Origin: Paragordius varius
Lineage: Eukaryota > Animalia > Nematomorpha
Assembly (NCBI GenBank): GCA_964247055.1
Contig: OZ176052.1
Coordinates: 2,170,001-2,234,000, forward strand
DNA: 64,000 nt
Direction: 5' to 3'
The position numbers and the translations under genes were made by a program. This document shows positions 21,481 to 63,270 of this stretch, in pieces. Below the pieces are notes generated by a model. The model saw nothing but the letters and a program-made list of their open reading frames with translations. It had not been told where the DNA came from and ran no database searches. Numbering within the stretch: the first letter of the stretch is position 1; every line of letters begins with the position of its first letter.

Positions 21481-23472
21481 CACTGTGCAACACGATTTTT
21501 AGACCAGAGTGAAAATTACTACATCTTATAGAGAATTTTTTTCTGAAAATAATGATATATTTAATATTTTCCTAGCACATTTTCACGAGCCGCTAAAAGG
21601 TTTCAAAAATCCAAAAACCATCAAAAATGCCTGTTTTTGTAACCCTATAATTTTTTGAATTTTATAGCTTATTATTTATTTTTTGGAGGATATTACAAAT
21701 TATATTTTAGAATTCATGTAACATTTTTAAATTTTTAAAAGTCTCTACTACTTTTTGATTTATTTAGAAAAAACGAAACTTAGCTCCAAAAAAATAGCGT
21801 TTCAAAACAATGAAAAATTAAAAGACGTGCAGGCACCATACCATTTTTTATACATAACAAAATGGAAAAATTACATGTTTAATTAAAAAATGTAAATATT
21901 AATTTTAGGAATAAATTAGTATATTTATAGTATAATTAATAAAATAATAAATATATAATATTAATTTGATATATATTATTTATAAATAAGAAATACTTTT
22001 AAACATGCAAATTTATTTATTATGTATTGTACGTGATTATATAAATCATGATATTTTGTTTTTTAATATACGAAAGTTTTTTTCAACAAATAAAAATATA
22101 AACATGCAAATAAATATAAACTGAAATGTTGAACTAACAGAGCAAAAAAGGCATTTATTTGTTTTTTTCTTTCATAATAAATATATTCGTATATTGTGTC
22201 TTAATTAAAAATATTTTAATATATTTATAATTTTGAAATCATTTCTGTATTAAATTTTTTAAAACCTTAGTAGTTTATAAATAAATGTACTTTAAAATAA
22301 TAACAAAAATATATAATAACATAATTGAAATATTTTTAAAAATCATATAATATTAATTCAAACACAGAGTTTATTATCCATTAACATTAATAAATTTAAA
22401 AATATTATCATTTTATTAAATTTATTATTATAACATTAACACTTCGATTCAAATTGGGGTATCTAAATACCTCAGACTAAATTTAAATTAATATTTTTAA
22501 AAAATACAGAAGGAAACGGTCCCAATTTAAATTTATGCTCCTATCTTGATAAAAATTATATAAATATGCCAAAATATCTTGATAAAATTTTGTTTTGAAA
22601 AAAAAGTTCCATCTCAAACTACTTCGACGCCATTTTTATTTTACAAAATTTTTGCAAAATATCGTCTTCATTTGATTTTAAAGGTAAAACTAAAGCTAAT
22701 TTTTTATATAATATACATCTAACATTGATTGAAATAGAAAAGCGGTTTATTTTGTATTATTTTTTAATTTTACAATTTGACACATGTCACGTTGACGAAA
22801 TTTTTACCTTTGGGTTTAGCTTAAAATAAGTAATATCAAGTATTTTTGAAAATTTTTTATATATTTCGGTTTATAAATGTTATATAAGTGCAAAATTTTG
22901 CCATGGTTTTGAATATTTCCATACTTTTTAAAGTATTTGTTTTTAAAAAGGCCTGGGGTATCCAACTACCCCAATTTGAATCGAAGGACTAAAATGAGTG
23001 TGTTGTATCCAAGTGTTAAATATATATACTATTTTTCATATTTATAAAAAAGCAATTAAATTTTATTATTTTAGTAATGTATAATGAAAAGCTGTCAATC
23101 AAATGATGCCAGTATGTCTCTTAATTTTTCATTGTTTTGAAACGCTATTTTTTTGGAGCTAAGTTTCGTTTTTTCCAAATAAATCAAAAAGTAGTAGAGA
23201 CTTTTAAAAATTTTAAAATGTTACATGAATTCTAAAATATAATTTGTAATATCCCCCAAAAAAAATATAATAAGCTATATAATTCAAGAAGTTATAGGGT
23301 TACAAAAACAGGCATTTTTGATGGTTTTTGGATTTTTGAAACCTTTTAGCGGCTCGTGAAAATGTGCTAGGAAAATATTAAATATATCATTATTTTCAGA
23401 AAAAAATTCTCTATAAGATGTCGTAATTTTCACTCTGGTCTAAAAGAAAAGGATAAAATTTGTTGCACAGTG
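21481..23472 (-). mobile_element. Element B copy 2, inverted near-identical copy of 14258-16249
   Basis: Same 1992-bp length, same nested MITE and same asymmetric ends, in reverse orientation. Confidence 0.85.
22440..23015 (-). mobile_element. piggyBac-like MITE nested in element B copy 2
   Basis: TTAA at 22436-39 and 23016-19; reverse complement of 14715-15290. Confidence 0.85.
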
Positions 23473-39452: not shown

Positions 39453-40315
39453 GTTTATAGTTTTAATCTGCCAAATTTGATGACACATCCGCTTATATAC
39501 CAAATGTAAATAAGGGCTTATTTGAATCTTGTGGATACTCATTAATATATGCTTTTATAAATTAAAAGATAATAATGCTTTCTATTAATGGGTTTCGCTA
39601 TTATCATATTTTAGAATGGATCTTTGTTAAGTTTTAGTTTTATATTATTTGATAAAAAATGTACTCCATAAATCTAATGTTTGACAATTATATATTATGC
39701 AGTTAATTATATTTTATACATTTATTAAAAAGAATAAAAATTTGAAAATTTCATTACTCTGTAGTTTTATTTAAATAAATGTGAAGTTTCAGATTTGCCT
39801 AAAATTTTTTCTATAGACCAAATTATTATAAAATTTTTTATATGGATTTAATTAAATGGGACTACTCTCAAATGTTGCACACGTTTTAATATTTTATATT
39901 ATAGAAATGAAAAAAGTTATTTCTGGAAACAATATTGGTTGTCAAAATTTATGTAAATCATTAATAAATTTATACTGCATTTTAACTCTCATGAATATGT
40001 AATTTGAAAATATATAACCCATAAATTAATTTAAAATCCATCTATAATTTATATATATATATTTGTGATGTATGTAGGACATATTTTAATATAAATTATA
40101 TCGGGAAAATGGAGTTTAAACAAAGGTGCAACTTTAAAAACGGATGATTTATGTATAAAAGGGAATAAAAGTTTGGAAACATAGTAAATAGAAGGAGAAA
40201 GTAACTTAAGAAATGAAAGAAGTTGTAAAAAACACTATTGGAAAAGGAGGATATGAAAGAAAAAATGTAGGAAAGGGTGAACTAAATTTGAAAAAGGTGT
40301 GAAACTGTAGAGGAA

Positions 40316-43300
40316 GGATGAAGTGGATATGAAGAAGGGTGAAATATTAGAAGAAACGGATGAAGTGGATATGAAGAAGGGTGAAACATTAGAAGAAACG
40401 GATGAAGTGGATATAAAGAAGGGTGAAACATTAGAAGAAACGGATGAAGTGGATATGAAGAAGGGTGAAACTTTAGAAGAAACGGATGAAGTGGATAATA
40501 AGAAGGGTTAAACATTAGAAGAAACGGAGGAAGTGGATATGAAGAAGGGTGAAACATTAGAAGAAACGGATGAAGTGGATATGAAGAAGGGTGAAACATT
40601 AGAAGAAACGGATGAAGTGGATATAAAGAAGGGTGAAACATTAGAAGAAACGGAAGTGGATATGAAGAAGGGTGAAACATTAGAAGAAACGGAGGAAGTG
40701 GATAATAAGAAGGGTAATACTTTAGAAGAAACGGATGAAGTGGATATGAAGAAGGGTGAAACATTAGAAGAAACGGATGAAGTGGATATGAAGAAGGGTG
40801 AAACATTAGAAGAAACGGATGAAGTGGATATGAAGAAGGGTGAAACATTAGAAGAAACGGATGAAGTGGATATGAAGAAGGGTGAAACATTAGAAGAAAC
40901 GGAAGTGGATATGAAGAAGGGTGAAACATTAGAAGAAACGGAGGAAGTGGATAATAAGAAGGGTAATACTTTAGAAGAAACGGATGAAGTGGATATGAAG
41001 AAGGGTTAAACATTAGAAGAAACGGAGGAAGTGGATAATAAGAAGGGTAATACTTTAGAAGAAACGGAAGTGGATATGAAGAAGGGTGAAACATTAGAAG
41101 AAACGGAGGAAGTGGATAATAAGAAGGGTAATACTTTAGAAGAAACGGAAGTGGATATGAAGAAGGGTGAAACATTAGAAGAAACGGAGGAAGTGGATAA
41201 TAAGAAGGGTAATACTTTAGAAGAAACGGATGAAGTGGATATGAAGAAGGGTGAAACATTAGAAGAAACGGATGAAGTGGATATGAAGAAGGTTGAAACT
41301 TTAGAAGAAACGTATGAAGTGGATATGAAGAAGGGTAATACTTTAGAAGAAACGGATGAAGTGGATATGAGGAAGGTTGAAACTTTAAAAGAAACGGATG
41401 AAGTGGATATGAAGAAGGGTGAAACATTAGAAGAAACGGATGAAGTGGATATGAAGAAGGGTGAAACATTAGAAGAAACGGATGAAGTGGATATGAAGAA
41501 GGGTGAAACATTAGAAGAAACGGAAGTGGATATGAAGAAGGGTGAAACATTAGAAGAAACGGAGGAAGTGGATAATAAGAAGGGTAATACTTTAGAAGAA
41601 ACGGATGAAGTGGATATGAAGAAGGGTGAAACATTAGAAGAAACGGAGGAAGTGGATAATAAGAAGGGTAATACTTTAGAAGAAACGGATGAAGTGGATA
41701 TGAAGAAGGGTGAAACATTAGAAGAAACGGATGAAGTGGATATGAAGAAGGGTGAAACATTAGAAGAAACGGATGAAGTGGATATGAAGAAGGGTGAAAC
41801 ATTAGAAGAAACGGATGAAGTGGATATGAAGAAGGGATAAACTTTAAAAGAAACGGATGAAGTGGATATGAAGAAGGGTTAAACATTAGAAGAAACGGAG
41901 GAAGTGGATATGAAGAAGGGATAAACTTTAAAAGAAACGGATGAAGTGGATATGAAGAAGGGTTAAACATTAGAAGAAACGGAGGAAGTGGATATGAAGA
42001 AGGGTAATACTTTAGAAGAAAAGGATGGAGTGGATATGAAGAAAGGATAAACATTAAAAGAAACGGATGAAGTGGATATGAAGAAGGGTTAAACATTAGA
42101 AGAAACGGAGGAAGTGGATATGAAGAAGGGTTAAACATTAGAAGAAACGGAGGAAGTGGATATGAAGAAGGGATAAACTTTAAAAGAAACGGAGGAAGTG
42201 GATATGAAGAAGGGTTAAACATTAGAAGAAACGGAGGAAGTGGATATGAAGAAGGGTAATACTTTAGAAGAAACGGATGAAGTGGATATGAGGAAGGTTG
42301 AAACTTTAAAAGAAACGGATGAAGTGGATATGAAGAAGGGTGAAACATTAGAAGAAACGGAGGAAGTGGATATGAAGAAGGGATAAACTTTAAAAGAAAC
42401 GGATGAAGTGGATATGAAGAAGGGTTAAACATTAGAAGAAACGGAGGAAGTGGATATGAAGAAGGGTAATACTTTAGAAGAAAAGGATGGAGTGGATATG
42501 AAGAAGGGATAAACATTAAAAGAAACGGATGAAGTGGATATGAAGAAGGGATAAACTTTAAAAGAAACGGATGAAGTGGATATGAAGAAGGGTTAAACAT
42601 TAGAAGAAACGGAGGAAGTGGATATGAAGAAGGGTTAAACATTAGAAGAAACGGAGGAAGTGGATATGAGGAAGGTTGAAACTTTAAAAGAAACGGATGA
42701 AGTGGATATGAAGAAGGGTGAAACTTTAAAAGAAACGGATGAAGTGGATATGAAGAAGGGTGAAACATTAGAAGAAACGGAGGAAGTGGATATGAAGAAG
42801 GGATAAACATTAGAAGAAACGGAGGAAGTGGATATGAAGAAGGTTGAAACTTTAGAAGAAACGTATGAAGTGGATATGAAGAAGGGTAATACTTTAGAAG
42901 AAACGGATGGAGTGGATATGAAGAAGGGTTAAACTTTAGAAGAAACGTATGAAGTGGATATGAAGAAGGGTAATACTTTAGAAGAAACGGAGGAAGTGGA
43001 TATGAGGAAGGTTGAAACTTTAAAAGAAACGGATGAAGTGGATATGAAGAAGGGTGAAACATTAGAAGAAACGGAGGAAGTGGATATGAAGAAGGGATAA
43101 ACATTAGAAGAAACGGAGGAAGTGGATATGAAGAAGGTTGAAACTTTAGAAGAAACGTAGGAAGTGGATATGAAGAAGGGTAATACTTTAGAAGAAACGG
43201 ATGGAGTGGATATGAAGAAGGGTTAAACTTTAGAAGAAACGTATGAAGTGGATATGAAGAAGGGTGAAACATTAGAAGAAACGGAGGAAGTGGATATGAG

Positions 43301-46300
43301 GAAGGTTGAAACTTTAAAAGAAACGGATGAAGTGGATATGAAGAAGGTTGAAACTTTAGAAGAAACGGATGAAGTGGATATGAAGAAGGGTTAAACATTA
43401 GAAGAAACGGAGGAAGTGGATATGAAGAAGGTTGAAACTTTAGAAGAAACGTATGAAGTGGATATGAAGAAGGGTAATACTTTAGAAGAAACGGATGGAG
43501 TGGATATGAAGAAGGGTTAAACTTTAGAAGAAACGTATGAAGTGGATATGAAGAAGGGTAATACTTTAGAAGAAACGGATGGAGTGGATATGAAGAAGGG
43601 TTAAACTTTAGAAGAAACGTATGAAGTGGATATGAAGATGGTTGAAACTTTAGAAGAAACGTATGAAGTGGATATGAAGAAGGGTAATACTTTAGAAGAA
43701 ACGGATGGAGTGGATATGAAGAAGGGTTAAACTTTAGAAGAAACGGATGAAGTGGATATGAAGAAGGGTGAAACATTAGAAGAAACGGAGGAAGTGGATA
43801 TGAAGAAGGGATAAACTTTAAAAGAAACGGATGAAGAGGATATGAAGAAGGGTTAAACATTAGAAGAAACGGAGGAAGTGGATATGAAGAAGGGTTAAAC
43901 ATTAGAAGAAACGGAGGAAGTGGATATGAAGAAGGGTTAAACTTTAGAAGAAACGGATGAAGTGGATATGAGGAAGGTTGAAACTTTAGAAGAAACGGAT
44001 GAAGTGGATATGAAGAAGGGTTAAACATTAGAAGAAACGGAGGAAGTGGATATGAAGAAGGGTGAAACATTAGAAGAAACGGAGGAAGTGGATATGAAGA
44101 AGGGTAATACTTTAGAAGAAACGGATGAAGTGGATATGAAGAAGGGTTAAACATTAGAAGAAACGGAGGAAGTGGATATGAGGAAGGTTGAAACTTTAAA
44201 AGAAACGGATGAAGTGGATATGAAGAAGGGTGAAACATTAGAAGAAACGGATGAAGTGGATATGAGGAAGGTTGAAACTTTAAAAGAAACGGATGAAGAG
44301 GATATGAAGAAGGGTGAAACTTTAGAAGAAACGGATGAAGAGGATATGAAGAAGGGTGAAACTTTAGAAGAAACGGATGAAGAGGATATGAAGAAGGGTG
44401 AAACTTTAGAAGAAACGGATGAAGTGGATATGAAGAAGGGTGAAACTTTAGAAGAAACGGATGAAGTGGATATGAAGAAGGGTGAAACATTAGAAGAAAC
44501 GGATGAAGTGGATATGAAGAAGGGTGAAACATTAGAAGAAACGGATGAAGTGGATATGAAGAAGAGTTAAACATTAGAAGAAACGGATGAAGTGGATATG
44601 AAGAAGAGTTAAACATTAGAAGAAACGGATGAAGTGGATATGAAGAAGAGTTAAACATTAGAAGAAACGGATGAAGTGGATATGAAGAAGGGTGAAACAT
44701 TAGAAGAAACGGAGGAAGTGGATATGAAGAAGGGTGAAACTTTAGAAGAAACGGATGAAGTGGATATGAAGAAGGGTGAAACTTTAGAAGAAACGGATGA
44801 AGTGGATATGAAGAAGGGTGAAACATTAGAAGAAACGGATGAAGTGGATATGAAGAAGGGTGAAACTTTAGAAGAAACGGATGAAGTGGATATGAAGAAG
44901 GGTGAAACTTTAGAAAAAACGGATGAAGTGGATATGAAGAAGGGTGAAACTTTAGAAGAAACGGATGAAGTGGATATGAAGAAGGGTGAAACATTAGAAG
45001 AAACGGATGAAATGGATATGAAGAAGGGTGAAACATTAGAAGAAACGGATGAAGTGGATATGAAGAAGGGTGAAACATTAGAAGAAACGGATGAAGTGGA
45101 TATGAAGAAGGTTGAAACTTTAGAAGAAACGGAGGAAGTGGATATGAAGAAGGGTGAAACATTAGGAGAAACGGATGAAGTGGATATGAAGAAGGGTGAA
45201 ACATTAGAAGAAACGGATGAAGTGGATATGAAGAAGGGTGAAACATTAGAAGAAACGGATGAAGTGGATATGAAGAAGGGTGAAACATTAGAAGAAACGG
45301 ATGAAGTGGATATGAAGAAGGGTGAAACATTAGAAGAAACGGATGAAGTGGATATGAAGAAGGGTGAAACTTTAGAAGAAACGGATGAAGTGGATAATAA
45401 GAAGGGTTAAACATTAGAAGAAACGGAGGAAGTGGATATGAAGAAGGGTGAAACATTAGGAGAAACGGATGAAGTGGATATGAAGAAGGGTGAAACATTA
45501 GAAGAAACGGATGAAGTGGATATGAAGAAGGGTGAAACATTAGAAGAAACGGATGAAGTGGATAATAAGAAGGGTGAAACTTTAGAAGAAACGGATGAAG
45601 TGGATAATAAGAAGGGTTAAACATTAGAAGAAACGGAGGAAGTGGATATGAAGAAGGGTGAAACATTAGAAGAAACGGATGAAGTGGATATGAAGAAGGG
45701 TGAAACATTAGAAGAAACGGATGAAGTGGATATGAAGAAGGGTGAAACATTAGAAGAAACGGATGAAGTGGATATGAAGAAGGGTGAAACATTAGAAGAA
45801 ACGGAGGAAGTGGATATGAAGAAGGGTGAATCTTTAGAAAAAACGGATGAAGTGGATATGAAGAAGGTTGAACATTAGAAGAAACGGAGGAAGTGGATAT
45901 GAAGAAGGGTGAAACTTTAGAAGAAACGGATAAGTGGATATGAAGAAGAGTTGAACATTTGAAGAAACGGAGGAAGTGGATATGAAGAAGGGTGAAACTT
46001 TAGAAGAAACGGATGAAGTGGATATGAAGAAGGGTGAAACATTAGAAGAAACGGATGAAGTGGATATGAAGAAGGGTGAAACTTTAGAAGAAACGGATGA
46101 AGTGGATATGAAGAAGGGTGAAACTTTAGAAGAAACGGATGAAGTGGATATGAAGAAGGGTGAAACATTAGAAGAAACGGATGAAGTGGATATGAAGAAG
46201 GGTGAAACTTTAGAAGAAACGGATGAAGTGGATATGAAGAAGGGTGAAACTTTAGAAGAAACGGATGAAGTGGATATGAAGAAGGGTGAAACATTAGAAG

Positions 46301-49300
46301 AAACGGATGAAGTGGATATAAAGAAGGGTGAAACATTAGAAGAAACGGATGAAGTGGATATGAAGAAGGGTGAAACTTTAGAAGAAACGGATGAAGTGGA
46401 TATGAAGAAGGGTGAAACTTTAGAAGAAACGGATGAAGTGCATATGAAGAAGGGTGAAACTTTAGAAGAAACGGATGAAGTGGATATGAAGAAGGGTGAA
46501 ACATTAGAAGAAACGGATGAAGTGGATATGAAGAAGGGTGAAACATTAGAAGAAACGGATGAAGTGGATATGAAGAAGGGTGAAACTTTAGAAGAAACGG
46601 ATGAAGTGGATAATAAGAAGGGTTAAACATTAGAAGAAACGGAGGAAGTGGATATGAAGAAGGGTGAAACATTAGAAGAAACGGAGGAAGTGGATATGAA
46701 GAAGGGTGAAACATTAGAAGAAACGGATGAAGTGGATATGAAGAAGGGTGAAACTTTAGAAGAAACGGATGAAGTGGATATGAAGAAGGGTGAAACTTTA
46801 GAAGAAACGGATGAAATGGATATGAAGAAGGGTGAAACATTAGAAGAAACGGATGAAGAGGATAGGAAGAAGGGTGAAACATTAGAAGAAACGGATGAAG
46901 TGGATATGAAGAAGGGTGAAACTTTAGAAGAAACGGATGAAGTGGATAATAAGAAGGGTTAAACATTAGAAGAAACGGAGGAAGTGGATATGAAGAAGGG
47001 TGAAACATTAGAAGAAACGGATGAAGTGGATATGAAGAAGGGTGAAACATTAGAAGAAACGGATGAAGTGGATATGAAGAAGGGTGAAACTTTAGAAGAA
47101 ACGGATGAAGTGGATAATAAGAAGGGTTAAACATTAGAAGAAACGGAGGAAGTGGATATGAAGAAGGGTGAAACATTAGAAGAAACGGATGAAGTGGATA
47201 TGAAGAAGGGTGAAACATTAGAAGAAACGGATGAAGTGGATATGAAGAAGGGTGAAACATTAGAAGAAACGGATGAAGTGGATATGAAGAAGGGTGAAAC
47301 TTTAGAAGAAACGGATGAAGAGGATATGAAGAAGGGTGAAACATTAAGAGAAACGGATGAAGAGGATATGAAGAAGGGTGAAACTTTAGAAGGTACGGAT
47401 GAAGAGGATATGAAGAAGGGTGAAACTTTAGAAGGTACGGATGAAGAGGATATGAAGAAGGGTGAAACTTTAGAAGAAACGGATGAAGAGGATATGAAGA
47501 AGGGTGAAACTTTAGAAGGTACGGATGAAGAGGATATGAAGAAGGGTGAAACTTTAGAAGGTACGGATGAAGAGGATATGAAGAAGGGTGAAACTTTAGA
47601 AGAAACGGATGAAGAGGATATGAAGAAGGGTGAAACTTTAGAAGAAACGGATGAAGAGGATATGAAGAAGGGTGAAACTTTAGAAGAAACGGATGAAGTG
47701 GATATGAAGAGGGATAATACTTTAGAAGAAACGGATGAAGTGGATATGAATAAGGGTAATACTTTAGAAGAAACGGATGAAGTGGATATGAATAAGGGTA
47801 ATACTTTAGAAGAAACGGATGAAGTGGATATGAATAAGGGTAATACTTTAGAAGAAACGGATGAAGTGGATATGAAGAAGGGTGAAACTTTAGAAGAAAC
47901 GGATGAAGTGGATAATAAGAAGGGTAATACTTTAGAAGAAACGGATGAATGGATATGAAGAAGGGTAAAACATTAGAAGAAACGGATGAAGTGGATATGA
48001 AGAAGGGTTAAACATTAGAAGAAACGGATGAAGAGGATAGTAAGAAGGGTTAAACATTAGAAGAAACGGATGAAGAGGATAGTAAGAAGGGTGAAACATT
48101 AGAAGAAACGGATGAAGTGGATATGAAGAAGGGTGAAACATTAGAAGAAACGGATGAAGTGGATATGAAGAAGGATAATACTTTAGAAGAAACGGATGAA
48201 GTGGATATGAAGAAGGATAATACTTTAGAAGAAACGGATGAAGTGGATATGAATAAGGGTAATACTTTAGAAGAAACGGATGAAGTGGATATGAATAAGG
48301 GTAATACTTTAGAAGAAACGGATGAAGTGGATATGAAGAAGGGTGAAACTTTAGAAGAAACGGATGAAGTGGATAATAAGAAGGGTAATACTTTAGAAGA
48401 AACGGATGAAGTGGATATGAAGAAGGGTAAAACATTAGAAGAAACGGATGAAGTGGATATGAAGAAGGGTTAAACATTAGAAGAAACGGATGAAGAGGAT
48501 AGTAAGAAGGGTTAAACATTAGAAGAAACGGATGAAGAGGATAGTAAGAAGGGTGAAACATTAGTAGAAACGGATGAAGTGGATATGAAGAAGGGTGAAA
48601 CTTTAGAAGAAACGGATGAAGTGGATATGAAGAAGAGTTAAACATTAGAAGAAACGGATGAAGTGGATATGAAGAAGGGTGAAACATTAGAAGAAACGGA
48701 TGAAGTGGATATGAAGAAGGGTGAAACATTAGAAGAAACGGATGAAGTGGATATGAAGAAGGATAATACTCTAGAAGAAACGGATGAAGAGGATAGTAAG
48801 AAGGGTTAAACATTAGAAGAAACGGATGAAGAGGATAGTAAAAAGGGTGAAACATTAGAAGAAACGGATGAAGAGGATATGAAGAAGGGTGAAACATTAG
48901 AAGAAACGGATGAAGTGGATATGAAGAAGGGTGAAACATTAGAAGAAACGGATGAAGTGGATATGAAGAAGAGTTAAACATTAGAAGAAACGGATGAAGT
49001 GGATATGAAGAAGGATAATACTTTAGAAGAAACGGATGAAGTGGATATGAAGAAGGGTGAAACATTAGAAGAAACGGAGGAAGTGGATATGAAGAAGGGT
49101 GAAACATTAGAAGAAACGGATGAAGTGGATATGAAGAAGGGTGAAACATTAGAAGAAACGGATGAAGTGGATATGAAGAAGGGTGAAACATTAGAAGAAA
49201 CGGATGAAGTGGATATGAAGAAGGATAATACTTTAGAAGAAACGGATGAAGAGGATAGTAAGAAGGGTTAAACATTAGAAGAAACGGATGAAGAGGATAG

Positions 49301-52300
49301 TAAAAAGGGTGAAACTTTAGAAGAAACGGATGAAGTGGATATGAAGAAGGGTGAAACTTTAGAAGAAACGGAGGAAGTGGATATGAAGAAGGGTGAAACT
49401 TTAGAAGAAACGGATGAAGTGGATATGAAGAAGGGTGAAACTTTAGAAGAAACGGATGAAGTGGATATGAAGAAGAGTTAAACATTAGAAGAAACGGATG
49501 AAGAGGATAGTAAGAAGTGTTAAACATTAGAAGAAACGGATGAAGAGGATAGTAAGAAGTGTTAAACATTAGAAGAAACGGATGAAGAGGATATGAAGAA
49601 GTGTTAAACATTAGAAGAAACGGATGAAGAGGATATGAAGAAGGGTGAAACATTAGAAGAAACGGATGAAGAGGATATGAAGAAGTGTTAAACATTAGAA
49701 GAAACGGATGAAGAGGATATGAAGAAGAGTTAAACATTAGAAGAAACGGATGAAGTGGATATGAAGAAGGGTAATACTTTAGAAGAAACGGATGAAGAGG
49801 ATATGAAGAAGGGTGAAACATTAGAAGAAACGGATGAAGAGGATATGAAGAAGGGTGAAACTTTAGAAGAAACGGATGAAGTGGATAATAAGAAGGGTGA
49901 AACATTAGAAGAAACGGATGAAGTGGATATGAAGAAGAGTTAAACATTAGAAGAAACGGATGAAGTGGATATGAAGAAGAGTTAAACATTAGAAGAAACG
50001 GATGAAGTGGATATGAAGAAGGGTAATACTTTAGAAGAAACGGATGAAGAGGATATGAAGAAGGGTGAAACATTAGAAGAAACGGATGAAGAGGATATGA
50101 AGAAGGGTGAAACTTTAGAAGAAACGGATGAAGTGGATAATAAGAAGGGTGAAACATTAGAAGAAACGGATGAAGTGGATATGAAGAAGGGTGAAACTTT
50201 AGAAGAAACGGATGAAGTGGATATGAAGAAGGGTGAAACTTTAGAAGAAACGGATGAAGTGGATATGAAGAAGGGTGAAACATTAGAAGAAACGGATGAA
50301 GTGGATATGAAGAAGGGTGAAACATTAGAAGAAACGGATGAAATGGATATGAAGAAGGGTGAAACATTAGAAGAAACGGATGAAGTGGATATGTAGAAGG
50401 GTGAAACATTAGAAGAAACGGATGAAGTGGATATGAAGAAGGGTGAAACATTAGAAGAAACGGATGAAGTGGATATGAAGAAGAGTTAAACATTAGAAGA
50501 AACGGATGAAGAGGATATGAAGAAGGGTGAAACTTTAGAAGAAACGGATGAAGTGGATATGAAGAAGGGTGAAACATTAGAAGAAACGGATGAAGTGGAT
50601 ATGAAGAAGGGTAAAACATTAGAAGAAACGGATGAAGTGGATATGAAGAAGAGTTAAACATTAGAAGAAACGGATGAAGTGGATATGAAGAAGAGTTAAA
50701 CATTAGAAGAAACGGATGAAGAGGATAGTAAAAAGGGTGAAACATTAGAAGAAACGGATGAAGTGGATATGAAGAAGGGTTAAACATTAGAAGAAACGGA
50801 GGAAGTGGATATGAAGAAGGGTGAAACATTAGAAGAAACGGATGAAGTGGATATGAAGAAGGGTGAAACATTAGAAGAAACGGAGGAAGTGGATATGAAG
50901 AAGGGTGAATCTTTAGAAAAAACGGATGAAGTGGATATGAAGAAGGTTGAACATTAGAAGAAACGGAGGAAGTGGATATGAAGAAGGGTGAAACATTAGA
51001 AGAAACGGATGAAGTGGATATGAAGAAGGTTGAACATTAGAAGAAACGGATGAAATGGATATGAAGAAGGGTGAAACATTAGAAGAAACGGATGAAGTGG
51101 ATATGAAGAAGGGTGAAACATTAGAAGAAACGGATGAAGTGGATATGAAGAAGGGTGAATCTTTAGAAAAAACGGATGAAGTGGATATGAAGAAGGTTGA
51201 ACATTAGAAGAAACGGAGGAAGTGGATATGAAGAAGGGTGAAACTTTAGAAGAAACGGATAAGTGGATATGAAGAAGGGTGAAACATTAGAAGAAACGGA
51301 TGAAGTGGATATGAAGAAGAGTTAAACATTAGAAGAAACGGATGAAGTGGATAATAAGAAGGGTGAAACTTTAGAAGAAACGGATGAAGTGGATAATGAG
51401 AAGGGTGAAACATTAGAAGAAACGGATGAAGTGGATAATAAGAAGGGTGAAACATTAGAAGAAACGGATGAAGTGGATATGAAGAAGGGTGAAACATTAG
51501 AAGAAACGGATGAAGAGGATAGTAAAAAGGGTGAAACATTAGAAGAAACGGATGAAGTGGATATGAAGAAGGGTGAAACATTAGAAGAAACGGATGAAGT
51601 GGATATGAAGAAGAGTTAAACATTAGAAGAAACGGATGAAGTGGATATGAAGAAGGGTGAAACATTAGAAGAAACGGAGGAAGTGGATATGAAGAAGGGT
51701 GAATCTTTAGAAAAAACGGATGAAGTGGATATGAAGAAGGGTTAAACATTAGAAGAAACGGATGAAGAGGATAGTAAAAAGGGTGAAACATTAGAAGAAA
51801 CGGATGAAGTGGATATGAAGAAGGGTGAAACATTAGAAGAAACGGATGAAGTGGATATGAAGAAGGGTGAAACTTTAGAAGAAACGGATGAAGAGGATAT
51901 GAAGAAGGCTGAAACATTAGAAGAAACGGATGAAATGGATATGAAGAAGGGTGAAACATTAGAAGAAACGGATGAAGTGGATATGAAGAAGGGTGAAACA
52001 TTAGAAGAAACGGATGAAATGGATATGAAGAAGGGTGAAACATTAGAAGAAACGGATGAAGTGGATATGAAGAAGGGTGAAACATTAGAAGAAACGGATG
52101 AAGTGGATATGAAGAAGGGTGAAACATTAGAAGAAACGGATGAAGTGGATATGAAGAAGAGTTAAACATTAGAAGAAACGGATGAAGTGGATATGAAGAA
52201 GAGTTAAACATTAGAAGAAACGGATGAAGAGGATATGAAGAAGGGTGAAACTTTAGAAGAAACGGATGAAGAGGATATGAAGAAGGGTGAAACTTTAGAA

Positions 52301-55300
52301 GAAACGGATGAAGTGGATATGAAGAAGGGTGAAACATTAGAAGAAACGGATGAAGTGGATATGAAGAAGGGTAAAACATTAGAAGAAACGGATGAAGTGG
52401 ATATGAAGAAGGTTGAACATTAGAAGAAACGGAGGAAGTGGATATGAAGAAGGGTGAAACATTAGAAGAAACGGATGAAGTGGATATGAAGAAGGGTGAA
52501 ACATTAGAAGAAACGGATGAAGTGGATATGAAGAAGGGTAAAACATTAGAAGAAACGGATGAAGTGGATATGAAGAAGGTTGAACATTAGAAGAAACGGA
52601 GGAAGTGGATATGAAGAAGGGTGAAACATTAGAAGAAACGGAGGAAGTGGATATGAAGAAGGGTGAAACTTTAGAAGAAACGGATAAGTGGATATGAAGA
52701 AGAGTTGAACATTAGAAGAAACGGATGAAGTGGATAATAAGAAGTGTGAAACATTAGAAGAAACGGATGAAGTGGATATGAAGAAGGGTGAAACATTAGA
52801 AGAAACGGATGAAGTGGATATGAAGAAGAGTTAAACATTAGAAGAAACGGATGAAGTGGATATGAAGAAGGGTGAAACATTAGAAGAAACGGATGAAGAG
52901 GATAGGAAGAAGGGTGAAACATTAGAAGAAACGGATGAAGTGGATATGAAGAAGGGTTAAACATTAGAAGAAACGGATGAAGAGGATAGTAAAAAGGGTG
53001 AAACATTAGAAGAAACGGATGAAGAGGATATGAAGAAGGGTGAAACATTAGAAGAAACGGATGAAATGGATATGAAGAAGGGTGAAACATTAGAAGAAAC
53101 GGATGAAGTGGATATGAAGAAGGGTGAAACATTAGAAGAAACGGATGAAGTGGATATGAAGAAGGGTTAAACATTAGAAGAAACGGATGAAGAGGATAGT
53201 AAAAAGGGTGAAACATTAGAAGAAACGGATGAAGAGGATATGAAGAAGGGTGAAACATTAGAAGAAACGGATGAAGAGGATATGAAGAAGGGTGAAACAT
53301 TAGAAGAAACGGATGAAATGGATATGAAGAAGGGTGAAACATTAGAAGAAACGGATGAAGTGGATATGAAGAAGGGTGAAACATTAGAAGAAACGGATGA
53401 AATGGATATGAAGAAGGGTGAAACATTAGAAGAAACGGATGAAGTGGATATGAAGAAGGGTGAAACTTTAGAAGAAACGGATGAAGTGGATATGAAGAAG
53501 GGTGAAACATTAGAAGAAACGGATGAAGTGGATATGAAGAAGGGTGAAACTTAGAAGAAACGGATGAAGTGGATATGAAGAAGGGTGAAACTTTAGAAGA
53601 AACGGATGAAGTGGATATGAAGAAGGGTAAAACATTAGAAGAAACGGATGAAGTGGATATGAAGAAGGGTGAAACATTAGAAGAAACGGATGAAGTGGAT
53701 ATGAAGAAGGGTGAAACTTTAGAAGAAACGGATAAGTGGATATGAAGAAGAGTTGAACATTAGAAGAAACGGATGAAGTGGATATGAAGAAGGGTGAAAC
53801 ATTAGAAGAAACGGATGAAGTGGATATGAAGAAGGGTAAAACATTAGAAGAAACGGATGAAGTGGATATGAAGAAGGGTGAAACATTAGAAGAAACGGAT
53901 GAAGTGGATATGAAGAAGGGTGAAACATTAGAAGAAACGGATGAAGAGGATAGGAAGAAGGGTGAAACATTAGAAGAAACGGATGAAGTGGATATGAAGA
54001 AGGGTTAAACATTAGAAGAAACGGATGAAGAGGATAGTAAAAAGGGTGAAACATTAGAAGAAACGGATGAAGAGGATATGAAGAAGGGTGAAACATTAGA
54101 AGAAACGGATGAAGAGGATATGAAGAAGGGTGAAACATTAGAAGAAACGGATGAAATGGATATGAAGAAGGGTGAAACATTAGAAGAAACGGATGAAGTG
54201 GATATGAAGAAGGGTGAAACATTAGAAGAAACGGATGAAGTGGATATGAAGAAGGGTGAAACTTTAGAAGAAACGGATGAAGTGGATATGAAGAAGGGTG
54301 AAACATTAGAAGAAACGGAGGAAGTGGATATGAAGAAGGGTGAAACTTTAGAAGAAACGGATGAAGTGGATATGAAGAAGGGTGAAACATTAGAAGAAAC
54401 GGATGAAGTGGATATGAAGAAGGGTGAAACTTTAGAAGAAACGGATGAAGTGGATATGAAGAAGGGTGAAACATTAGAAGAAACGGATGAAGTGGATATG
54501 AAGAAGGGTGAAACTTTAGAAGAAACGGATGAAGTGGATATGAAGAAGGGTGAAACTTAAGAAGAAACGGATGAAGTGGATATGAAGAAGGGTGAAACAT
54601 TAGAAGAAACGGATGAAGTGGATATAAAGAAGGGTGAAACATTAGAAGAAACGGAGGAAGTGGATATGAAGAAGGGTGAAACTTTAGAAGAAACGGATGA
54701 AGTGGATATGAAGAAGGGTGAAACATTAGAAGAAACGGATGAAGTGGATATGAAGAAGGGTGAAACTTTAGAAGAAACGGATGAAGTGGATATGAAGAAG
54801 GGTGAAACATTAGAAGAAACGGATGAAGTGGATATGAAGAAGGGTGAAACATTAGAAGAAACGGATGAAGTGGATATGAAGAAGGGTGAAACTTTAGAAG
54901 AAACGGATGAAGTGGATATGAAGAAGGGTGAAACTTTAGAAGAAACGGATGAAGTGGATATGAAGAAGGGTGAAACATTAGAAGAAACGGATGAAGTGGA
55001 TATGAAGAAGGGTAAAACATTAGAAGAAACGGATGAAGTGGATATGAAGAAGAGTTAAACATTAGAAGAAACGGATGAAGTGGATATGAAGAAGAGTTAA
55101 ACATTAGAAGAAACGGATGAAGTGGATATGAAGAAGGGTGAAACTTTAGAAGAAACGGATGAAGAGGATATGAAGAAGGGTGAAACATTAGAAGAAACGG
55201 ATGAAGTGGATATAAAGAAGGGTGAAACATTAGAAGAAACGGATGAAGTGGATATGAAGAAGGGTGAAACATTAGAAGAAACGGATGAAGTGGATATGAA

Positions 55301-58300
55301 GAAGGGTGAAACTTTAGAAGAAACGGATGAAGAGGATATGAAGAGAAACATTAGAAGAAACGGAGGAAGTGGATATGAAGAAGGGTGAAACTTTAGAAGA
55401 AACGGATGAAGTGGATATGAAGAAGGGTGAAACTTTAGAAAAAACGGATGAAGTGGATATGAAGAAGGGTGAAACTTTAGAAGAAACGGATGAAGTGGAT
55501 ATGAAGAAGGGTGAAACTTTAGAAGAAACGGATGAAGTGGATATAAAGAAGGGTGAAACATTAGAAGAAACGGATGAAGTGGATATGAAGAAGTGTGAAA
55601 CTTTAGAAGAAACGGATGAAGTGGATATGAAGAAGGGTGAAACATTAGAAGAAACGGATGAAGTGGATATAAAGAAGGGTGAAACATTAGAAGAAACGGA
55701 TGAAGTGGATATGAAGAAGGGTGAAACATTAGAAGAAACGGATGAAGTGGATATGAAGAAGAGTTAAACATTAGAAGAAACGGATGAAGTGGATATGAAG
55801 AAGAGTTAAACATTAGAAGAAACGGATGAAGTGGATATGAAGAAGGGTGAAACATTAGAAGAAACGGATGAAGTGGATATGAAGAAGGGTGAAACTTTAG
55901 AAGAAACGGATGAAGTGGATAATAAGAAGGGTTAAACATTAGAAGAAACGGAGGAAGTGGATATGAAGAAGAGTTAAACATTAGAAGAAACGGATGAAGT
56001 GGATATGAAGAAGGGTTAACCTTTAGAAGAAACGGAGGAAGTGGATATGAAGAAGGGTTAAACATTAGAAGAAACGGATGAAGTGGATATGAAGAAGGGT
56101 GAAACTTTAGAAGAAACGGATGAAGTGGATATGAAGAAGGGTGAAACATTAGAAGAAACGGATGAAGTGGATATGAAGAAGGGTGAAACATTAGAAGAAA
56201 CGGAGGAAGAGGATATGAAGAAGGGTGAAACATTAGAAGAAACGGATGAAGTGGATATGAAGAAGAGTTAAACATTAGAAGAAACGGATGAAGTGGATAT
56301 GAAGAAGGGTGAAACTTTAGAAGAAACGGATGAAGTGGATAATAAGAAGGGTTAAACATCAGAAGAAACGGAGGAAGTGGATATGAAGAAGGGTGAAACA
56401 TTAGAAGAAACGGATGAAGTGGATATGAAGAAGGGTGAAACATTAGAAGAAACGGAGGAAGAGGATATGAAGAAGGGTGAAACATTAGAAGAAACGGAGG
56501 AAGTGGATATGAACAAGGGTTAAACATTAGAAGAAACGGATGAAGATGATAGGAAGAAGGGTGAAACATTAGAAGAAACGGATGAAGTGGATATGAAGAA
56601 GGGTGAAACTTTAGAAGAAACGGATGAAGTGGATAATAAGAAGGGTTAAACATTAGAAGAAACGGAGGAAGTGGATATGAAGAAGGGTTACCTTTAGAAG
56701 AAACGGAGGAAGTGGATATGAACAAGGGTTAAACATTAGAAGAAACGGATGAAGATGATAGGAAGAAGGGTGAAACATTAGAAGAAACGGATGAAGTGGA
56801 TATGAAGAAGGGTGAAACTTTAGAAGAAACGGATGAAGTGGATAATAAGAAGGGTTAAACATTAGAAGAAACGGAGGAAGTGGATATGAAGAAGGGTTAC
56901 CTTTAGAAGAAACGGAGGAAGTGGATATGAACAAGGGTTAAACATTAGAAGAAACGGATGAAGATGATAGGAAGAAGGGTGAAACATTAGAAGAAACGGA
57001 TGAAGTGGATATGAAGAAGGGTGAAACTTTAGAAGAAACGGATGAAGTGGATAATAAGAAGGGTTAAACATTAGAAGAAACGGAGGAAGTGGATATGAAG
57101 AAGGGTTAACCTTTAGAAGAAACGGAGGAAGTGGATATGAACAAGGGTTAAACATTAGAAGAAACGGATGAAGATGATAGGAAGAAGGGTGAAACATTAG
57201 AAGAAACGGATGAAGTGGATATGAAGAAGGGTGAAACTTTAGAAGAAACGGATGAAGTGGATAATAAGAAGGGTTAAACATCAGAAGAAACGGAGGAAGT
57301 GGATATGAAGAAGGGTGAAACATTATAAGAAACGGATGAAGTGGATATGAAGAAGGGTGAAACATTAGAAGAAACGGATGAAGTGGATATGAAGAAGGGT
57401 GAAACATTAGAAGAAACGGAGGAAGTGGATATGAAGAAGGGTGAAACTTTAGAAGAAACGGATGAAGTGGATATGAAGAAGGGTGAAACTTTAGAAGAAA
57501 CGGATGAAGTGGATATGAAGAAGGGTGAAACTTTAGAAGAAACGGATGAAGTGGATATGAAGAAGGGTGAAACATTAGAAGAAACGGATGAAGAGGATAG
57601 GAAGAAGGGTGAAACTTTAGAAGAAACGGATGAAGTGGATATGAAGAAGGGTGAAACATTAGAAGAAACGGATGAAGAGGATAGGAAGAAGGGTGAAACA
57701 TTAGAAGAAACGGATGAAGTGGATATGAAGAAGGGTGAAACTTTAGAAGAAACGGATGAAGTGGATAATAAGAAGGGTGAAACATTAGAAGAAACGGATG
57801 AAGTGGATATGAAGAAGGGTGAAACTTTAGAAGAAACGGATGAAGTGGATATGAAGAAGGGTGAAACTTTAGAAGAAACGGATGAAGAGGATATGAAGAA
57901 GAGTTAAACATTAGAAGAAACGGATGAAGTGGATATGAAGAAGGGTGAAACATTAGAAGAAACGGATGAAGAGGATATGAAGAAGAGTTAAACATTAGAA
58001 GAAACGGATGAAGTGGATATGAAGAAGGGTGAAACATTAGAAGAAACGGATGAAGTGGATATGAAGAAGGGTGAAACATTAGAAGAAACGGATGAAGAGG
58101 ATATGAAGAAGGGTGAAACTTTAGAAGAAACGGATGAAGAGGATAGTAAGAAGGGTGAAACTTTAGAAGAAACGGAGGAAGTGGATATGAAGAAGGGTGA
58201 AACATTAGAAGAAACGGATGAAGTGGATATGAAGAAGGGTGAAACATTAGAAGAAACGGATGAAATGGATATGAAGAAGGGTGAAACATTAGAAGAAACG

Positions 58301-58858
58301 GATGAAGAGGATAGGAAGAAGGGTGAAACTTTAGAAGAAACGGATGAAGAGGATAGGAAGAAGGGTGAAACATTAGAAGAAACGGATGAAGTGGATATGA
58401 AGAAGGGTGAAACATTAGAAGAAACGGATGAAGAGGATATGAAGAAGGGTGAAACTTTAGAAGAAACGGATGAAGTGGATATGAAGAAGGGTGAAACTTT
58501 AGAAGAAACGGATGAAGTGGATATGAAGAAGGGTGAAACTTTAGAAGAAACGGATGAAGTGGATATGAAGAAGGGTGAAACATTAGAAGAAACGGATGAA
58601 GAGGATAGGAAGAAGGGTGAAACTTTAGAAGAAACGGATGAAGAGGATAGGAAGAAGGGTGAAACATTAGAAGAAACGGAGGAAGTGGATATGAAGAAGG
58701 GTGAAACATTAGAAGAAACGGATGAAGTGGATATGAAGAAGAGTTAAACATTAGAAGAAACGGATGAAGTGGATATGAAGAAGGGTGAAACTTTAGAAGA
58801 AACGGAGGAAGTGGATATGAACAAGGGTTAAACATTAGAAGAAACGGAGGAAGTGGAT
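40316..58858. repeat. 18.5-kb tandem satellite, 42-bp unit, about 440 copies
   Basis: Consensus GGATGAAGTGGATATGAAGAAGGGTGAAACATTAGAAGAAAC (19 A, 14 G, 7 T, 2 C). Degenerate units grade into unique DNA at about 40090-40315 and 58859-58950. Confidence 0.98.
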
Positions 58859-60318
58859 TGGAAGAATATTGAAACCTTAGAAACCGACAATTTGGTTGTT
58901 AAAAATGATTGATGTTTAGAAACGGATTAAAAGGTGTTATGAAGGTTCTGCCAAACTAGTTTTGGTAAGATTTTTAAGAATTTATATTCATTATATGCAT
59001 TTGTTTGAGTGTTGTTTAGAATTGTAAAATAAATCATAAGTATAATTTTATAATGGGGCTTTAATAGGACAAAACATTCAAAGGGGGTCTACGACAGTTT
59101 CTTTATTTATGATAACTCATAAAATTATATTCGTCCCTTTATATATCCTTATTTTATTGTATAAGTTTTGAATCTTACCAATCGATATCTGACAGGGCAC
59201 GGCTAGTTTATTTAAATTCCTTTGATATAGTTTAAACATTTATTTTAAAAAATTATATTTTTATTATTTTATTGAATTATTTAAACATATATTCCTTTTT
59301 AAACTAAATATTTCCTAAAGGGGTCACTCTCATTAATGTATACGGATAATGTTAAATATAATTAAAACAGATGTTATTCTCTGTTATGTCTAAATTTGAA
59401 TTCGCTCTTTATATAAAATCATAAACTAGAACACTAATTATTTTTTAAATAATTTTATATTTTGTAACAAATGCGTATGTTGCATAAGTTGATGATAATT
59501 AGTGGGTCAGGTTAAAAATCAACGCATCTCTAACTTTGACTGTCACATAGTGGTGTTAAGGAGAATGCCCGTCATACTTTTTCACGATATCAGATGTCAA
59601 AATATTTAGTTCTATGATACTCATTTGATATAGATAAAACGAAAAAATAATGTTTTACAAATTAATTAAGAAATTGATATTTAATATTCGTCTATCCTTT
59701 GATAAATGGATTTAACGTTTTGACAATTAGATTGCTTTCGTTTTGTGTAATTAAAATTATCAAATATATTTGCATAAATGTGGTATAAGCTCTGAATAAA
59801 CAGGGTGACAGTCATAATAGTGAATATTTTGGTTTTTATTCATAAAAAGGCGCGGTATTTATACCGATTGAAATTAAATTATAGGTAAAATTCTAAAAAT
59901 TTCAACTATTTTACCAAAAAAAATTATGTCTACATTGTTATTTTATTACAGTAGTGTATTGTAAAAACAACAAATGTTTATAATTATCATTATTTCCCTA
60001 TATTTTAACATAACCATTATTAATTTGATTAAGAACAAACTATTTTTACACCATATGTTACTGTATAGATAAAAAATATTACACATATATGTTTTTCATA
60101 AAATGTACGTTGTTTGTTTTATTTCTTACTAACAGGCGTAAACACAACTCCCTCTACATATAAATATAAACGATACGAATGCATAAATATAACAAATGTA
60201 TAGATATTGTTTAGGTACATATATATTTATTTTATATACCATTCTAACATTTTTTGTTTGTTTTCGTTAAATAATTTAAACCACTTTGTATGTTATAATT
60301 TTATACGTTATAATTTCA

Positions 60319-60589
60319 ATGGTCGAGAACAATTGTATGCCCGCCACTTTTTCTAAATTATTGGAAAATGAAATCTCTGATAATAATGATATTACAATGC
60401 AAAGGAAGGCTGAAGTATGCATTGCATCTGCAATTCAAAATCACTATCTTGGTACCAATATTAATGTACAAGAATCTCTAAATTTTCCAACAAATTCAGA
60501 TAATAATGGGACAAAACTTGTATTTACTGCAAACAATAACAACGAAACAGACGCTTCTAATTCCGAAAAACCAAAAACACCAAGAAGAA
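60319..60589 (+). CDS. Putative first coding exon (about 90 aa, N/S/T-rich), unknown product
   Basis: ATG at 60319, open frame ending KPKTPRR at a phase-1 GT donor (AGAA|GTATAC, 60590). No recognisable domain; may be spurious. Confidence 0.35.
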
Positions 60590-61188
60590 GTATACTATTA
60601 TTTTGATATATGTGATCCTCTTACGATTCCCATTTAATATGTGTTGCTAGTTTTTCATTAAATATTGCCGGTAGCATTTACAGTAAAGAGCAATTCTATT
60701 GGCGAAAAAACAGATAATATTCAGCCAAATTTAAACCAATTTTCTTCTCTTAATGTAAATGCTCTCTGGCAATTTTCAATGAAAAACTAGCGCTATTGCT
60801 CTTTAAGGTTTTTTTATTTTTTGTTCAGTATTTTTTTATTTTTATGCCATATGTGATAGCAAAGCAGATGGTTTAATACAGTAGCATATGGTACAAAAAA
60901 TAGTTTGTTCAAAAATAAATGAACAAAACTAATTTTAACACATAAAAAAACTTGTTCAATTGCAACCATTTGTTGTTTTACCAAACTCTATTTTAAAATG
61001 AAAATATTCAAAATTAATGTTGTCATAAAAAATTCATTTTTTAACCTAAACCTATTGTAATAATCTTCGCAGATTTTGCGAATAAATTCAATATTTTGCC
61101 AAGTTCGTCCATCTCTATGTACTATTTTAAAAATAAGCTTTATCCCAAAACATAATAGTATACCACACTATAGTTGGGCAATTTTCAC

Positions 61189-61299
61189 CACAGTAGTGTA
61201 GGAAAAAACAACTAAATGTTGAATAAACATTTTTTCCTTTCTTCCATTACTCTGTTTATTTTATTCAATATTTTGTTGTACATTTCATGCACTACTGTG
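61189..61299. repeat. 111-bp hairpin or tiny MITE with a 40-bp imperfect inverted repeat
   Basis: CACAGTAGTG(T)AGGAAAAAAACAACTAAATGTTGAATAAA versus TTTATTCAATATTTTGTTGTACATTTCATGCACTACTGTG. No TSD seen. Confidence 0.5.
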
Positions 61300-61408
61300 T
61301 TGCGCATTGCCCGATTAGTGTGAAATAAACAACCATAATATTATTATGCTGTAATAAAGGTCTTTCTATAAATAAAATCAATTATTATTATTTATAAAAA
61401 ATTGTTTA

Positions 61409-61969
61409 TAACTTCGAGTCAAATTGGGGTATCTAAGTACCCCAGGCAATATTGAATTTGATATTTTTAAAAAAAAACTAATGAAAAAAACGGTCCCAAT
61501 TTAAATTTATGCATCTTTCCTCATAAAAATTATATGAATAACCCGAAATATCTCAATAAATTTAGTTTTTAAATATGGGTTCCATATCAAACCACTTAGG
61601 CGCCATTTTTATTTTACAACGTTTTGGCAAAATATCCTGTTTATTTGATTTCAAAGCTAAAATTAAAGCGCATATTTTAATTTAATTCACATCTAACATT
61701 GATAGAAACATAAAAAGTGGTTTATTTTGTATTATTAAAACTAATGCACATATGAGGTTGACTAAATTTTTACCTTTGTGTTTCACCTTAAAATAACTAA
61801 TATCAAGTATTTTTGAATATTTTTATATTTCGGTTAAGTAATGTTATATGAGTGCACACTTTTCATGTTTTTACATATTTTTTGAAGTATTTAATTTTAA
61901 GCAGGCCTGGGGTATCAAACTACCCCAATTTGAATCGAAGGACCGAAATGAATGTGTTGTATCCAAGTG
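61409..61969 (-). mobile_element. piggyBac-like MITE, moderately diverged
   Basis: Ends ...GTTGTATCCAAGTG|TTAA (61970-73). The other end ACTTCGAGTCAAATTGGGGTATC has a mutated TTAA. Confidence 0.8.
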
Positions 61970-62193
61970 TTAATGTTGCAAGAATGATCTAAAAAATCAT
62001 CTGACGAGACTTTACAAATTTTATTCCCGAACAAATGATAAAAATGTTTCCCTTGATTCTAAAATAATTTCAAATGATTATATTTCTTAAAACAACATCT
62101 CAAAATACGGAAAAATCTACCTCCATTCTCTCTGGCTATTAATTTAATTAATCCAAATTCTGAGCTTATTAGTTAAGCTTTGCAATTACTATC

Positions 62194-62227
<34 letters not shown>

Positions 62228-62248
62228 TTTTTTCCCACTGACATATAG

Positions 62249-63270
62249 AAAATAATAAATGGAATGAAGAAAAACTCAAACTGGCCTACAACTATTTCGC
62301 CGATCCGGCTTACAATCAAAAGACTAATACCGAACTTGCAAAGTTAATTGGCGTTAACAAAATTAGTCTTGGGCGTTACCGACAAGATTTGGCTAAAGGC
62401 AAGGAAATACATTTAACTAATAGTGGTAGAAGGCCAAACTACGAATTGATGAAGTGGTTGAAAGGCGTTTTCGAAAACGATAATACCATGAATCGAAAAC
62501 AACTTAAACAAATGCTACCAGCTTCGTTTGAGAAAGTTTCCCTAGTCACCATACTAATTACACTTGGTAAAATGGGTATGAGAAGCAAAATGCATCGCAT
62601 TTACGAGGAGGAGATTGTCAATACGCCAGAAATTATTAACCAACGTTACCATTTTGCCGTACGGACCAAAGATGTACCCATGAATAAAATATTTTACATA
62701 AAACAAGTTCAAGTGTTTCCAAATGGATTCATTAAACGAGTATATGTTCACAAAGACGAACCACCTACCCTAAAATATACGAAGGAACGAACAAGCCTTA
62801 TGTGTCTCGTGGGTGTGAATGGTGTCATCCGATATGATATTAAACGGGGTCTTTATGATGCAACTAGTTACGAAACATTTCTCGTCAAATGCTTAAATAT
62901 GCCTCAAACTAATGGTTCATATCTTGTGTTTGATCCAACAAATGTTATGGTAAACTTCGATACTCCAGCCCTAAGTCAGTTTAGGGAGAGATTGATTTTA
63001 TTACCCCTGTATAGTCAACAATTGAATCCGGCACATTTATTCCTTAACAAATTCCTTAAAGAACATAACGTAACGGCTCGTAGCGATACGATTGATTTAT
63101 GCTCTAAAATCGTCGATTTAATTCAAACCATAGATCAAAAACTTATCAAGGGTTATTACAACTTCTCTCATAAACTTTTGTGCAACGTTGCTTTAGCTGG
63201 GAAACCGTTAACAAAAGAATTACATGTTAATCGGCACACCAAACTCAAATATGATTTAAATTGTGATTAA
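62249..63270 (+). CDS. Intact Tc1/IS630-like (DDE_3) transposase-derived ORF with a degenerate catalytic triad
   Basis: Frame is open from 62242 to TAA at 63270. HTH-like NTELAKLIGVNKISLGRY lies upstream of the track start. DDE-fold motifs: IFYIKQ (cf. IFIDES), TSLMCLVGVNGV, SYETFL, YLVFDP (cf. IVMDN), LLPLYSQQLNPAH (cf. LPPYSPxLNPIE). Preceded by a splice acceptor at 62247-48. Confidence 0.8.

Follow-up and report, generated by a model that had tools for sequence, protein, structure and literature searches.

Host genes derived from Tc1/mariner and pogo transposases are well known, as SETMAR and the CENP-B family illustrate. Human SETMAR (Metnase) is a mariner-type transposase derived from Hsmar1 and fused to a SET domain; its DDD triad has changed to DDN, the first two Asp are kept, and some nuclease activity is retained. 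CENP-B and the other proteins derived from pogo/Tigger are immobile and catalytically dead, keep the N-terminal helix-turn-helix (HTH), and have arisen repeatedly as paralogous host genes. The CENP-B-type proteins belong to the pogo branch (DDxD), are conserved across wide taxa, and have established targets.

The gene investigated here lies near the end of a 64,000-nucleotide stretch of DNA from the hairworm Paragordius varius, which we call the window. Like SETMAR, it is a transposase of the Tc1/mariner superfamily with an altered third catalytic residue that is fixed in the host; unlike SETMAR, it has only one of the three catalytic residues and shows no fusion partner. It differs from the CENP-B type in its branch, being Tc1/IS630-like, and in that no orthologue of it was found among 1.84 billion representative proteins. 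Autonomous Tc1/IS630 elements, represented by the L004 to L006 copies in this genome and by DD34E transposases such as that of Thelohanellus kitauei (KII64747.1), match it in length, in the two HTH units, in the GR(K/R)P linker and the RNase H-like domain, and in the PYSxQLNP motif. A phase-1 intron just before a conserved Trp, a candidate one in the window gene, is common to it and the hairworm Tc1-like members. However, the autonomous elements carry D, D and E, are bounded by 226-nt terminal inverted repeats (TIRs) and TA duplications, and occur in several near-identical copies; the window gene, with K, D and H, is present once and lacks TIRs. It has been stated in general terms that domesticated DNA-binding transposases have arisen repeatedly and that a DNA-binding protein with a dead catalytic domain is the usual outcome of transposase domestication (PMC4091102). 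We conclude that the window gene is probably a domesticated transposase, an example of a kind of event that is already known. More specifically, we assign a probability of about 0.7 to the reading that it is an immobilised Tc1/IS630-derived gene of the DD30E hairworm clade whose product, no longer able to cut DNA, is maintained as a protein by the host. The coordinates of the features and of the relatives discussed below are given in Table 1.

Table 1. Features of the window gene (window positions) and its Tc1-like relatives in the genome (contig positions).
Feature	Position	Strand	Remarks
Candidate exon 1: ATG, 84 codons and one base	60337..60589	+	Inferred from sequence
Candidate intron 1, 1659 nt	60590..62248	+	Limits from donor/acceptor reading
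Exon 2: whole transposase-like body, uninterrupted	62249..63270	+	340 codons and TAA stop
First helix-turn-helix (PAI-like), residues 8-50	62266..62394	+	AlphaFold2 helices 8-19, 28-35, 39-50; pLDDT above 90
GRRP linker motif (AT-hook-like) between both HTH units	62425..62436	+	
Second helix-turn-helix (RED-like), residues 66-109	62440..62571	+	AlphaFold2 helices 66-78, 84-89, 100-109
RNase H-like (DDE_3-type) domain, metal-binding triad incomplete, residues 112-316	62578..63192	+	Pfam and Foldseek
Lys153 (AAA), first catalytic Asp column	62701..62703	+	D in 76/80; L002 has N, L003 keeps D
Asp230 (GAT), second catalytic Asp retained	62932..62934	+	D in 79/80
His264 (CAT), catalytic Glu column, NPAH instead of NPIE	63034..63036	+	E in 76/80
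Window gene	C3:2232245-2233267	+	100%; K, D, H
L002	C3:3388607-3389566	-	47% identity to window gene; N, D, H
L003	C3:9587540-9588490	+	31% identity to window gene; D, D, H
L004, L005, L006	C1:12493682-12494671, C4:12551695-12552684, C5:10539215-10540204		Near-identical Tc1-like copies
L007/L008	C11:1383397-1384335, 1386234-1387172		Identical intact Tc1-like ORFs, DDE kept, inverted, 1.9 kb apart

The sequence-only reading had described a candidate domesticated Tc1/IS630-like transposase of about 340 uninterrupted codons, and this length is borne out: on the forward strand 341 sense codons are open from 62245 to 63267, followed by a stop at 63268-70. Its assignment to the Tc1/IS630 group also holds. 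Alone, the window protein matches Pfam DDE_3 over residues 164-280 at E 0.022, its 15.1 bits falling short of the 28.6-bit cut-off, whereas four of the five aligned clade members match the same family, the best at E 2.2e-22. The genome contains a graded series of Tc1-like relatives, and through these intermediates the homology of the window protein to Tc1/IS630 transposases is clear from the sequence comparisons. A profile of the three closest paralogues, searched against 1.84 billion representative proteins, found 317 Tc1-like proteins at E<=1e-3, of which 60 reach E<=1e-10 and the best 3e-20; the same search found no match with E<1e-30 and no orthologue. Among the best 150 library matches, of which the motif pattern could score about 130, Glu occupies the third site in 124 and His in none, and the second Asp and the Glu are separated by 34 residues in 100 of the 112 for which the spacing was measurable. 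In the PDB the sequence of the single protein returned noise, and the profile gave a marginal match to Sleeping Beauty (E 0.9). A word-index protein search with the window protein gave no match at E<=1e-3, not even to itself, which shows that the proteins of this genome are absent from that collection. Exons 1 and 2 were searched separately, and every search and fold reported here concerns the product of one exon.

The scaffold of the transposase is well preserved. In an AlphaFold2 model of the exon 2 protein, computed from an 80-sequence alignment, two three-helix units are followed by an alpha/beta domain, with a mean pLDDT of 90.4 and a pTM of 0.79. Foldseek matches this model to full-length Mos1 (E 9.9e-13), to the catalytic domain of Sleeping Beauty (target-normalised TM 0.63-0.65), and to the transposase domain of SETMAR (3f2k), whose target-normalised TM of 0.70 is the best among the listed matches. 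The bipartite arrangement of HTH units and an RNase H-like fold that characterises the IS630/Tc1/mariner superfamily is thus present in the AlphaFold2 model and its Foldseek matches. Both the preservation of this scaffold and the comparison with Tc1/mariner structures, which the sequence-only reading had respectively claimed and proposed, came out in its favor. In the alignment, the W-x-E-E-K...A motif of the first HTH is kept in all hairworm relatives. The linker between the HTH units reads SGRRPN in the window protein and in L002, and GRK(S/P) in the transposable elements L004 and L007; GRRP-type linkers have a role in minor-groove binding in the paired-like domains of Tc1 and Sleeping Beauty.

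The active site is a different matter. When the catalytic columns are read from the 80-sequence Tc1/IS630 alignment, the window protein has K153, D230 and H264 in place of a complete DDE/D triad, and no acidic residue aligns with the first or third site. These are exactly the residues and positions that the sequence-only reading had named, with 33 residues between Asp230 and His264; the outcome that it had listed as refuting, a profile alignment with intact acidic residues there, was not obtained. His at the Glu column occurs only in the window protein, L002 and L003 within this alignment. Conserved neighbors of the catalytic residues are altered as well (DE to KQ, DN...H to DP...M, and NPIE to NPAH), and the predicted strand that holds column 153 (residues 149-157) is without an acidic residue. 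The earlier comparison with DD34E was right in that two of the three residues are lost; the spacing of the parental hairworm clade, however, is 30 and not 34, since 30 residues separate the second Asp and the Glu in its mobile members. The 33-residue spacing of the window protein corresponds to these 30 residues plus a three-residue insertion after the second Asp, which is common to L002 and L003.

In a maximum-likelihood tree the window gene, L002 and L003 form a clade (SH-aLRT 100), which groups with the mobile L004 and L007 (SH-aLRT 97) and then with a protein from Gordionus sp. m RMFG-2023 (SH-aLRT 96). The three near-identical copies of the first mobile family, L004 to L006, are 2.2 kb long, have 226-nt TIRs at 98% identity with CAGT termini, and are flanked by TA duplications; from its sequence this element is apparently active. 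Its DD30E spacing is rare, occurring in four of the best 150 library matches. Inverted pairs of Tc1-like sequences like that of L007 and L008 are also found on C8 (315528/318691) and C3 (7588367/7591554). A second Tc1-like family (L013 to L019, e.g., C4:1217290-1218283) has at least eight near-identical copies, in which the coding sequence consists of two open frames of about 186 and 160 amino acids; the gap of about 110 bp between them may be an intron or a shared frameshift.

The Gordionus protein (CAK9300787.1, P0007, 364 amino acids) is the nearest relative outside this genome. Annotated Gordionus proteins are included in the library, and this was the only hairworm protein identified among the matches that we looked up. 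This member of the hairworm Tc1-like clade combines a basic N-terminal extension, a W-x-x-x-K start and the 30-residue spacing, and its third catalytic residue is also lost (D, D, A). We considered it as an orthologue of the window gene; however, the replacement is Ala and not His, and the sequences in this genome that it matches best, at 30% identity, are those of the mobile L004 family. No orthologue of CAK9300787.1 was found in this genome. Judging from its sequence, it may represent an independent case of a disabled transposase gene.

The window gene is present once in the 110-Mb genome (one match at 100%), the next best relative being 47% identical; at the level of DNA, an AT run is the only repeated sequence between 61975 and 64000. 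We looked for TIRs by local alignment of the 1.4 kb upstream with the reverse complement of the 1.4 kb downstream, using shuffled sequence as the null. None were found in these flanks: the best score was 17.0, within the range of the shuffles (13.9 +/- 1.5, maximum 19), whereas L004, used as a positive control, scored 213.5. Neither the TIRs with a TA duplication nor the multiple similar copies of an autonomous element were found for the window gene. The expectation of a single copy in the sequence-only reading was therefore confirmed for both protein and DNA, and its failure to see TIRs or TA-flanked ends nearby is corroborated by the controlled test.

L002 and L003 are located on the same contig as the window gene; both are intact, single copy, and without TIRs. 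All three share the NPAH motif with its His, as well as the three-residue insertion. Loss of the active site therefore preceded the divergence of the paralogues, and the simplest reading of the sequences is that the change from Glu to His occurred once, before that divergence. Between the three paralogues pS is 0.75-0.77, i.e., saturated, and pN is 0.34-0.44; between the window gene and L002 the differences at the three codon positions are 0.39, 0.31 and 0.59. The proteins have nevertheless kept 31-47% identity along their full length, and this identity is even over the HTH and RNase H-like parts. Because synonymous sites are saturated and pN is lower, protein-level selection persisted long after the loss of the catalytic Glu; measured between paralogues and not between orthologues, it covers most of the period that followed the damage to the active site. 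Purifying selection after the loss of catalysis and mobility, which distinguishes domestication, is found here between paralogues, and this comparison forms the core of the evidence for the host-maintained gene suggested earlier. The paralogue comparison would be compatible with a recent loss of function in the window copy, at a neutral divergence below about 5%. Of the 3069 single substitutions that are possible in this AT-rich frame, 152 create a stop, and the probability that no stop arises falls to 0.08 at 5% neutral change and to 0.006 at 10%.

The frame that starts at 62245 contains no in-frame ATG before codon 69, and an upstream exon is therefore needed. In every intact relative in the genome the frame likewise opens a few codons upstream of the conserved Trp (W-x-E-E-K) and lacks an ATG at that point. 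The start of exon 2 directly follows a candidate splice acceptor, the AG at 62247-8, which is preceded by a T-rich tract and a branch-point-like CTGAC. Within 2.5 kb upstream, only one frame combines openness, a basic C-terminal cluster and a phase-1 A/GTATA donor. This candidate exon 1 encodes a tail rich in N, S and T that ends in the basic cluster KPKTPRR before the phase-1 donor A/GTATAC; ATGs at 60319, 60337 and 60397 lie in one frame and have the donor at 60590 in common. The sequence is of low complexity and unique in the genome, and no similarity to the N-terminal exons of the relatives was found. Nevertheless, the candidate exon agrees with L003 and the element L004 in phase, donor type, basic ending, and position three to four codons before the conserved Trp. 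In L003 an ATG exon ending in KRKRKHN is followed by a 23-nt phase-1 intron. The 5' part of the L004 transposase gene can be read as three exons with apparent introns of 23-25 nt; the last of these introns, in phase 1, is preceded by basic residues and lies four codons upstream of the Trp. The intron homologous to the candidate intron of the window gene is 23 nt long in both L003 and L004.

The candidate intron of the window gene holds a MITE of about 570 bp (about 61411-61974), and an (AT)14 run (62196-62224) is situated just before the acceptor, which reads ...CTGACATATAG. For L002 a candidate exon of 36 codons ending in KKREK lies about 2.37 kb upstream, separated from the main exon by a presumed long intron in which pieces of this MITE family are likewise found; when this intron was compared with that of the window gene, the common MITE copies and AT runs were the only homology. 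Two other arrangements for the window gene were rejected. A short intron of 33 nt (GT at 62216) would be preceded by an exon consisting of the (AT)n run, with a split codon that reads TAA, and exon 1 candidates within the MITE (ATG at 61848) are located in a repeat of at least 40 copies. The window gene has an (AT)n run directly upstream of its main-exon acceptor, and so does L002 (L021 reverse strand, about 4400-4430), a resemblance that may be due either to common ancestry or to coincidence.

The MITE is a foldback element of about 570 bp with internal inverted arms, CACTT...AAGTG ends, and TTAA (or TA) flanks. At least 40 copies occur genome-wide at about 80% identity, the copy in the intron being about 20% diverged from its family, which we count among the evidence for long-term selection on the adjoining exon; in addition to the intron copy (61411-61974), the window contains copies at 14711-15289 and 22441-23019. 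A separate repeat, an 18.6-kb tandem array with a 42-bp unit (443 copies, 93% matches), occupies positions 40289-58882 and has an extreme excess of G and A on the forward strand, with a GC skew of about 0.74. As 42 bp correspond to 14 codons, long frames are open on both strands of the array: they reach 1836 amino acids on the reverse strand, and encode a KKGETLEETDEVDM repeat on the forward strand. The array may be either a satellite or a repetitive coding exon.

An alternative explanation for the window gene is that it is a dead relic, i.e., a pseudogene, all that is left of an old Tc1-like element of low copy number, with a frame that is still open by chance. The start of the main exon without an in-frame ATG, the swelling of the presumed first intron to 1.66 kb by a MITE, and the lack of an orthologue among the 1.84 billion representative proteins could all be read in this way, and many decayed Tc1-like fragments with stops are indeed found elsewhere in the genome. 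If this were the case, however, one would have to accept that three copies at synonymous saturation all stayed open over 327-342 codons in stop-prone, AT-rich DNA (the genome has roughly 25% G+C), with pN at about half of pS, when only 10% neutral change would leave a probability of 0.006 for an intact window frame; a young copy, on the other hand, should still have TIRs, and none were found. We therefore regard a relic as unlikely. Somewhat less likely again is a role in repression, in which the host would use the protein to bind the inverted repeats of related transposons or of the foldback MITE and to block active transposase. The DNA-binding half is preserved and confidently modelled, and active-looking relatives are present in the genome. 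However, the protein is only 30-32% identical to these mobile relatives, which makes a shared DNA specificity doubtful. The sequence-only reading had named the TA-flanked foldback as a possible target of such a regulator, a suggestion that finds no support: blastn matched this MITE to neither the L004 nor the L007 element, their TIRs included, and the termini differ (TTAA/TA with CACTT... in the MITE, TA with CAGT... in L004).

The remaining alternatives retain some form of DNA cleavage or mobility. RNase H-fold enzymes can use His at the third site, for example in the Asp-Asp-His triad of Argonaute PIWI domains, and the paralogue L003 keeps D-D-H; the window protein might by analogy be a working nuclease in which His replaces Glu as a metal ligand. 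Alternatively, the gene might still be mobile, or be mobilised in trans by the intact DDE relatives with perfect TIRs that coexist with it in the genome. We consider this group of explanations highly improbable: in the window copy the first Asp is replaced by Lys as well, and the conserved neighbors around the catalytic positions are lost, and all three genes occur only once each and lack TIRs. A related idea, to which we give hardly more weight, distributes the functions within the family. L003 (D-D-H) would be a nuclease with Argonaute-like metal ligation, and the window protein (K-D-H) and L002 (N-D-H) would be its non-catalytic DNA-binding partners, in a lineage-specific family whose change from Glu to His preceded its expansion. 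If this were true, the hairworm would possess a host-run, transposase-derived system for cutting DNA and not a simple DNA-binding relic.

Compared with these alternatives, domestication, which is well supported as regards long-term constraint, immobility and the broken triad, accounts for the loss of the triad and of the mobile ends in a gene that has nevertheless stayed intact for a very long time, and this combination suggests that the protein was most likely recruited by the host for DNA binding. According to this explanation, exon 1 would supply the ATG and a basic, NLS-like tail, and would be joined to the main exon by splicing of the 1.66-kb intron that holds the MITE. The protein would then enter the nucleus and bind specific DNA through its paired-like HTH domain, and the dead catalytic domain may serve for dimerisation or as a scaffold, as it does in other domesticated transposases of the Tc1/mariner/pogo type.

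What this family adds to the known cases is a series within a single genome, which leads from mobile DD30E elements with perfect inverted repeats, through a D-D-H paralogue with a short ancestral intron, to two paralogues in which the first Asp is also lost and long first introns have been acquired. The series shows the order of steps from a transposase to a small host gene family in Nematomorpha, a barely studied phylum. If expression and orthologues are confirmed, the three genes would provide three candidate sequence-specific DNA-binding proteins of recent origin for hairworm biology.
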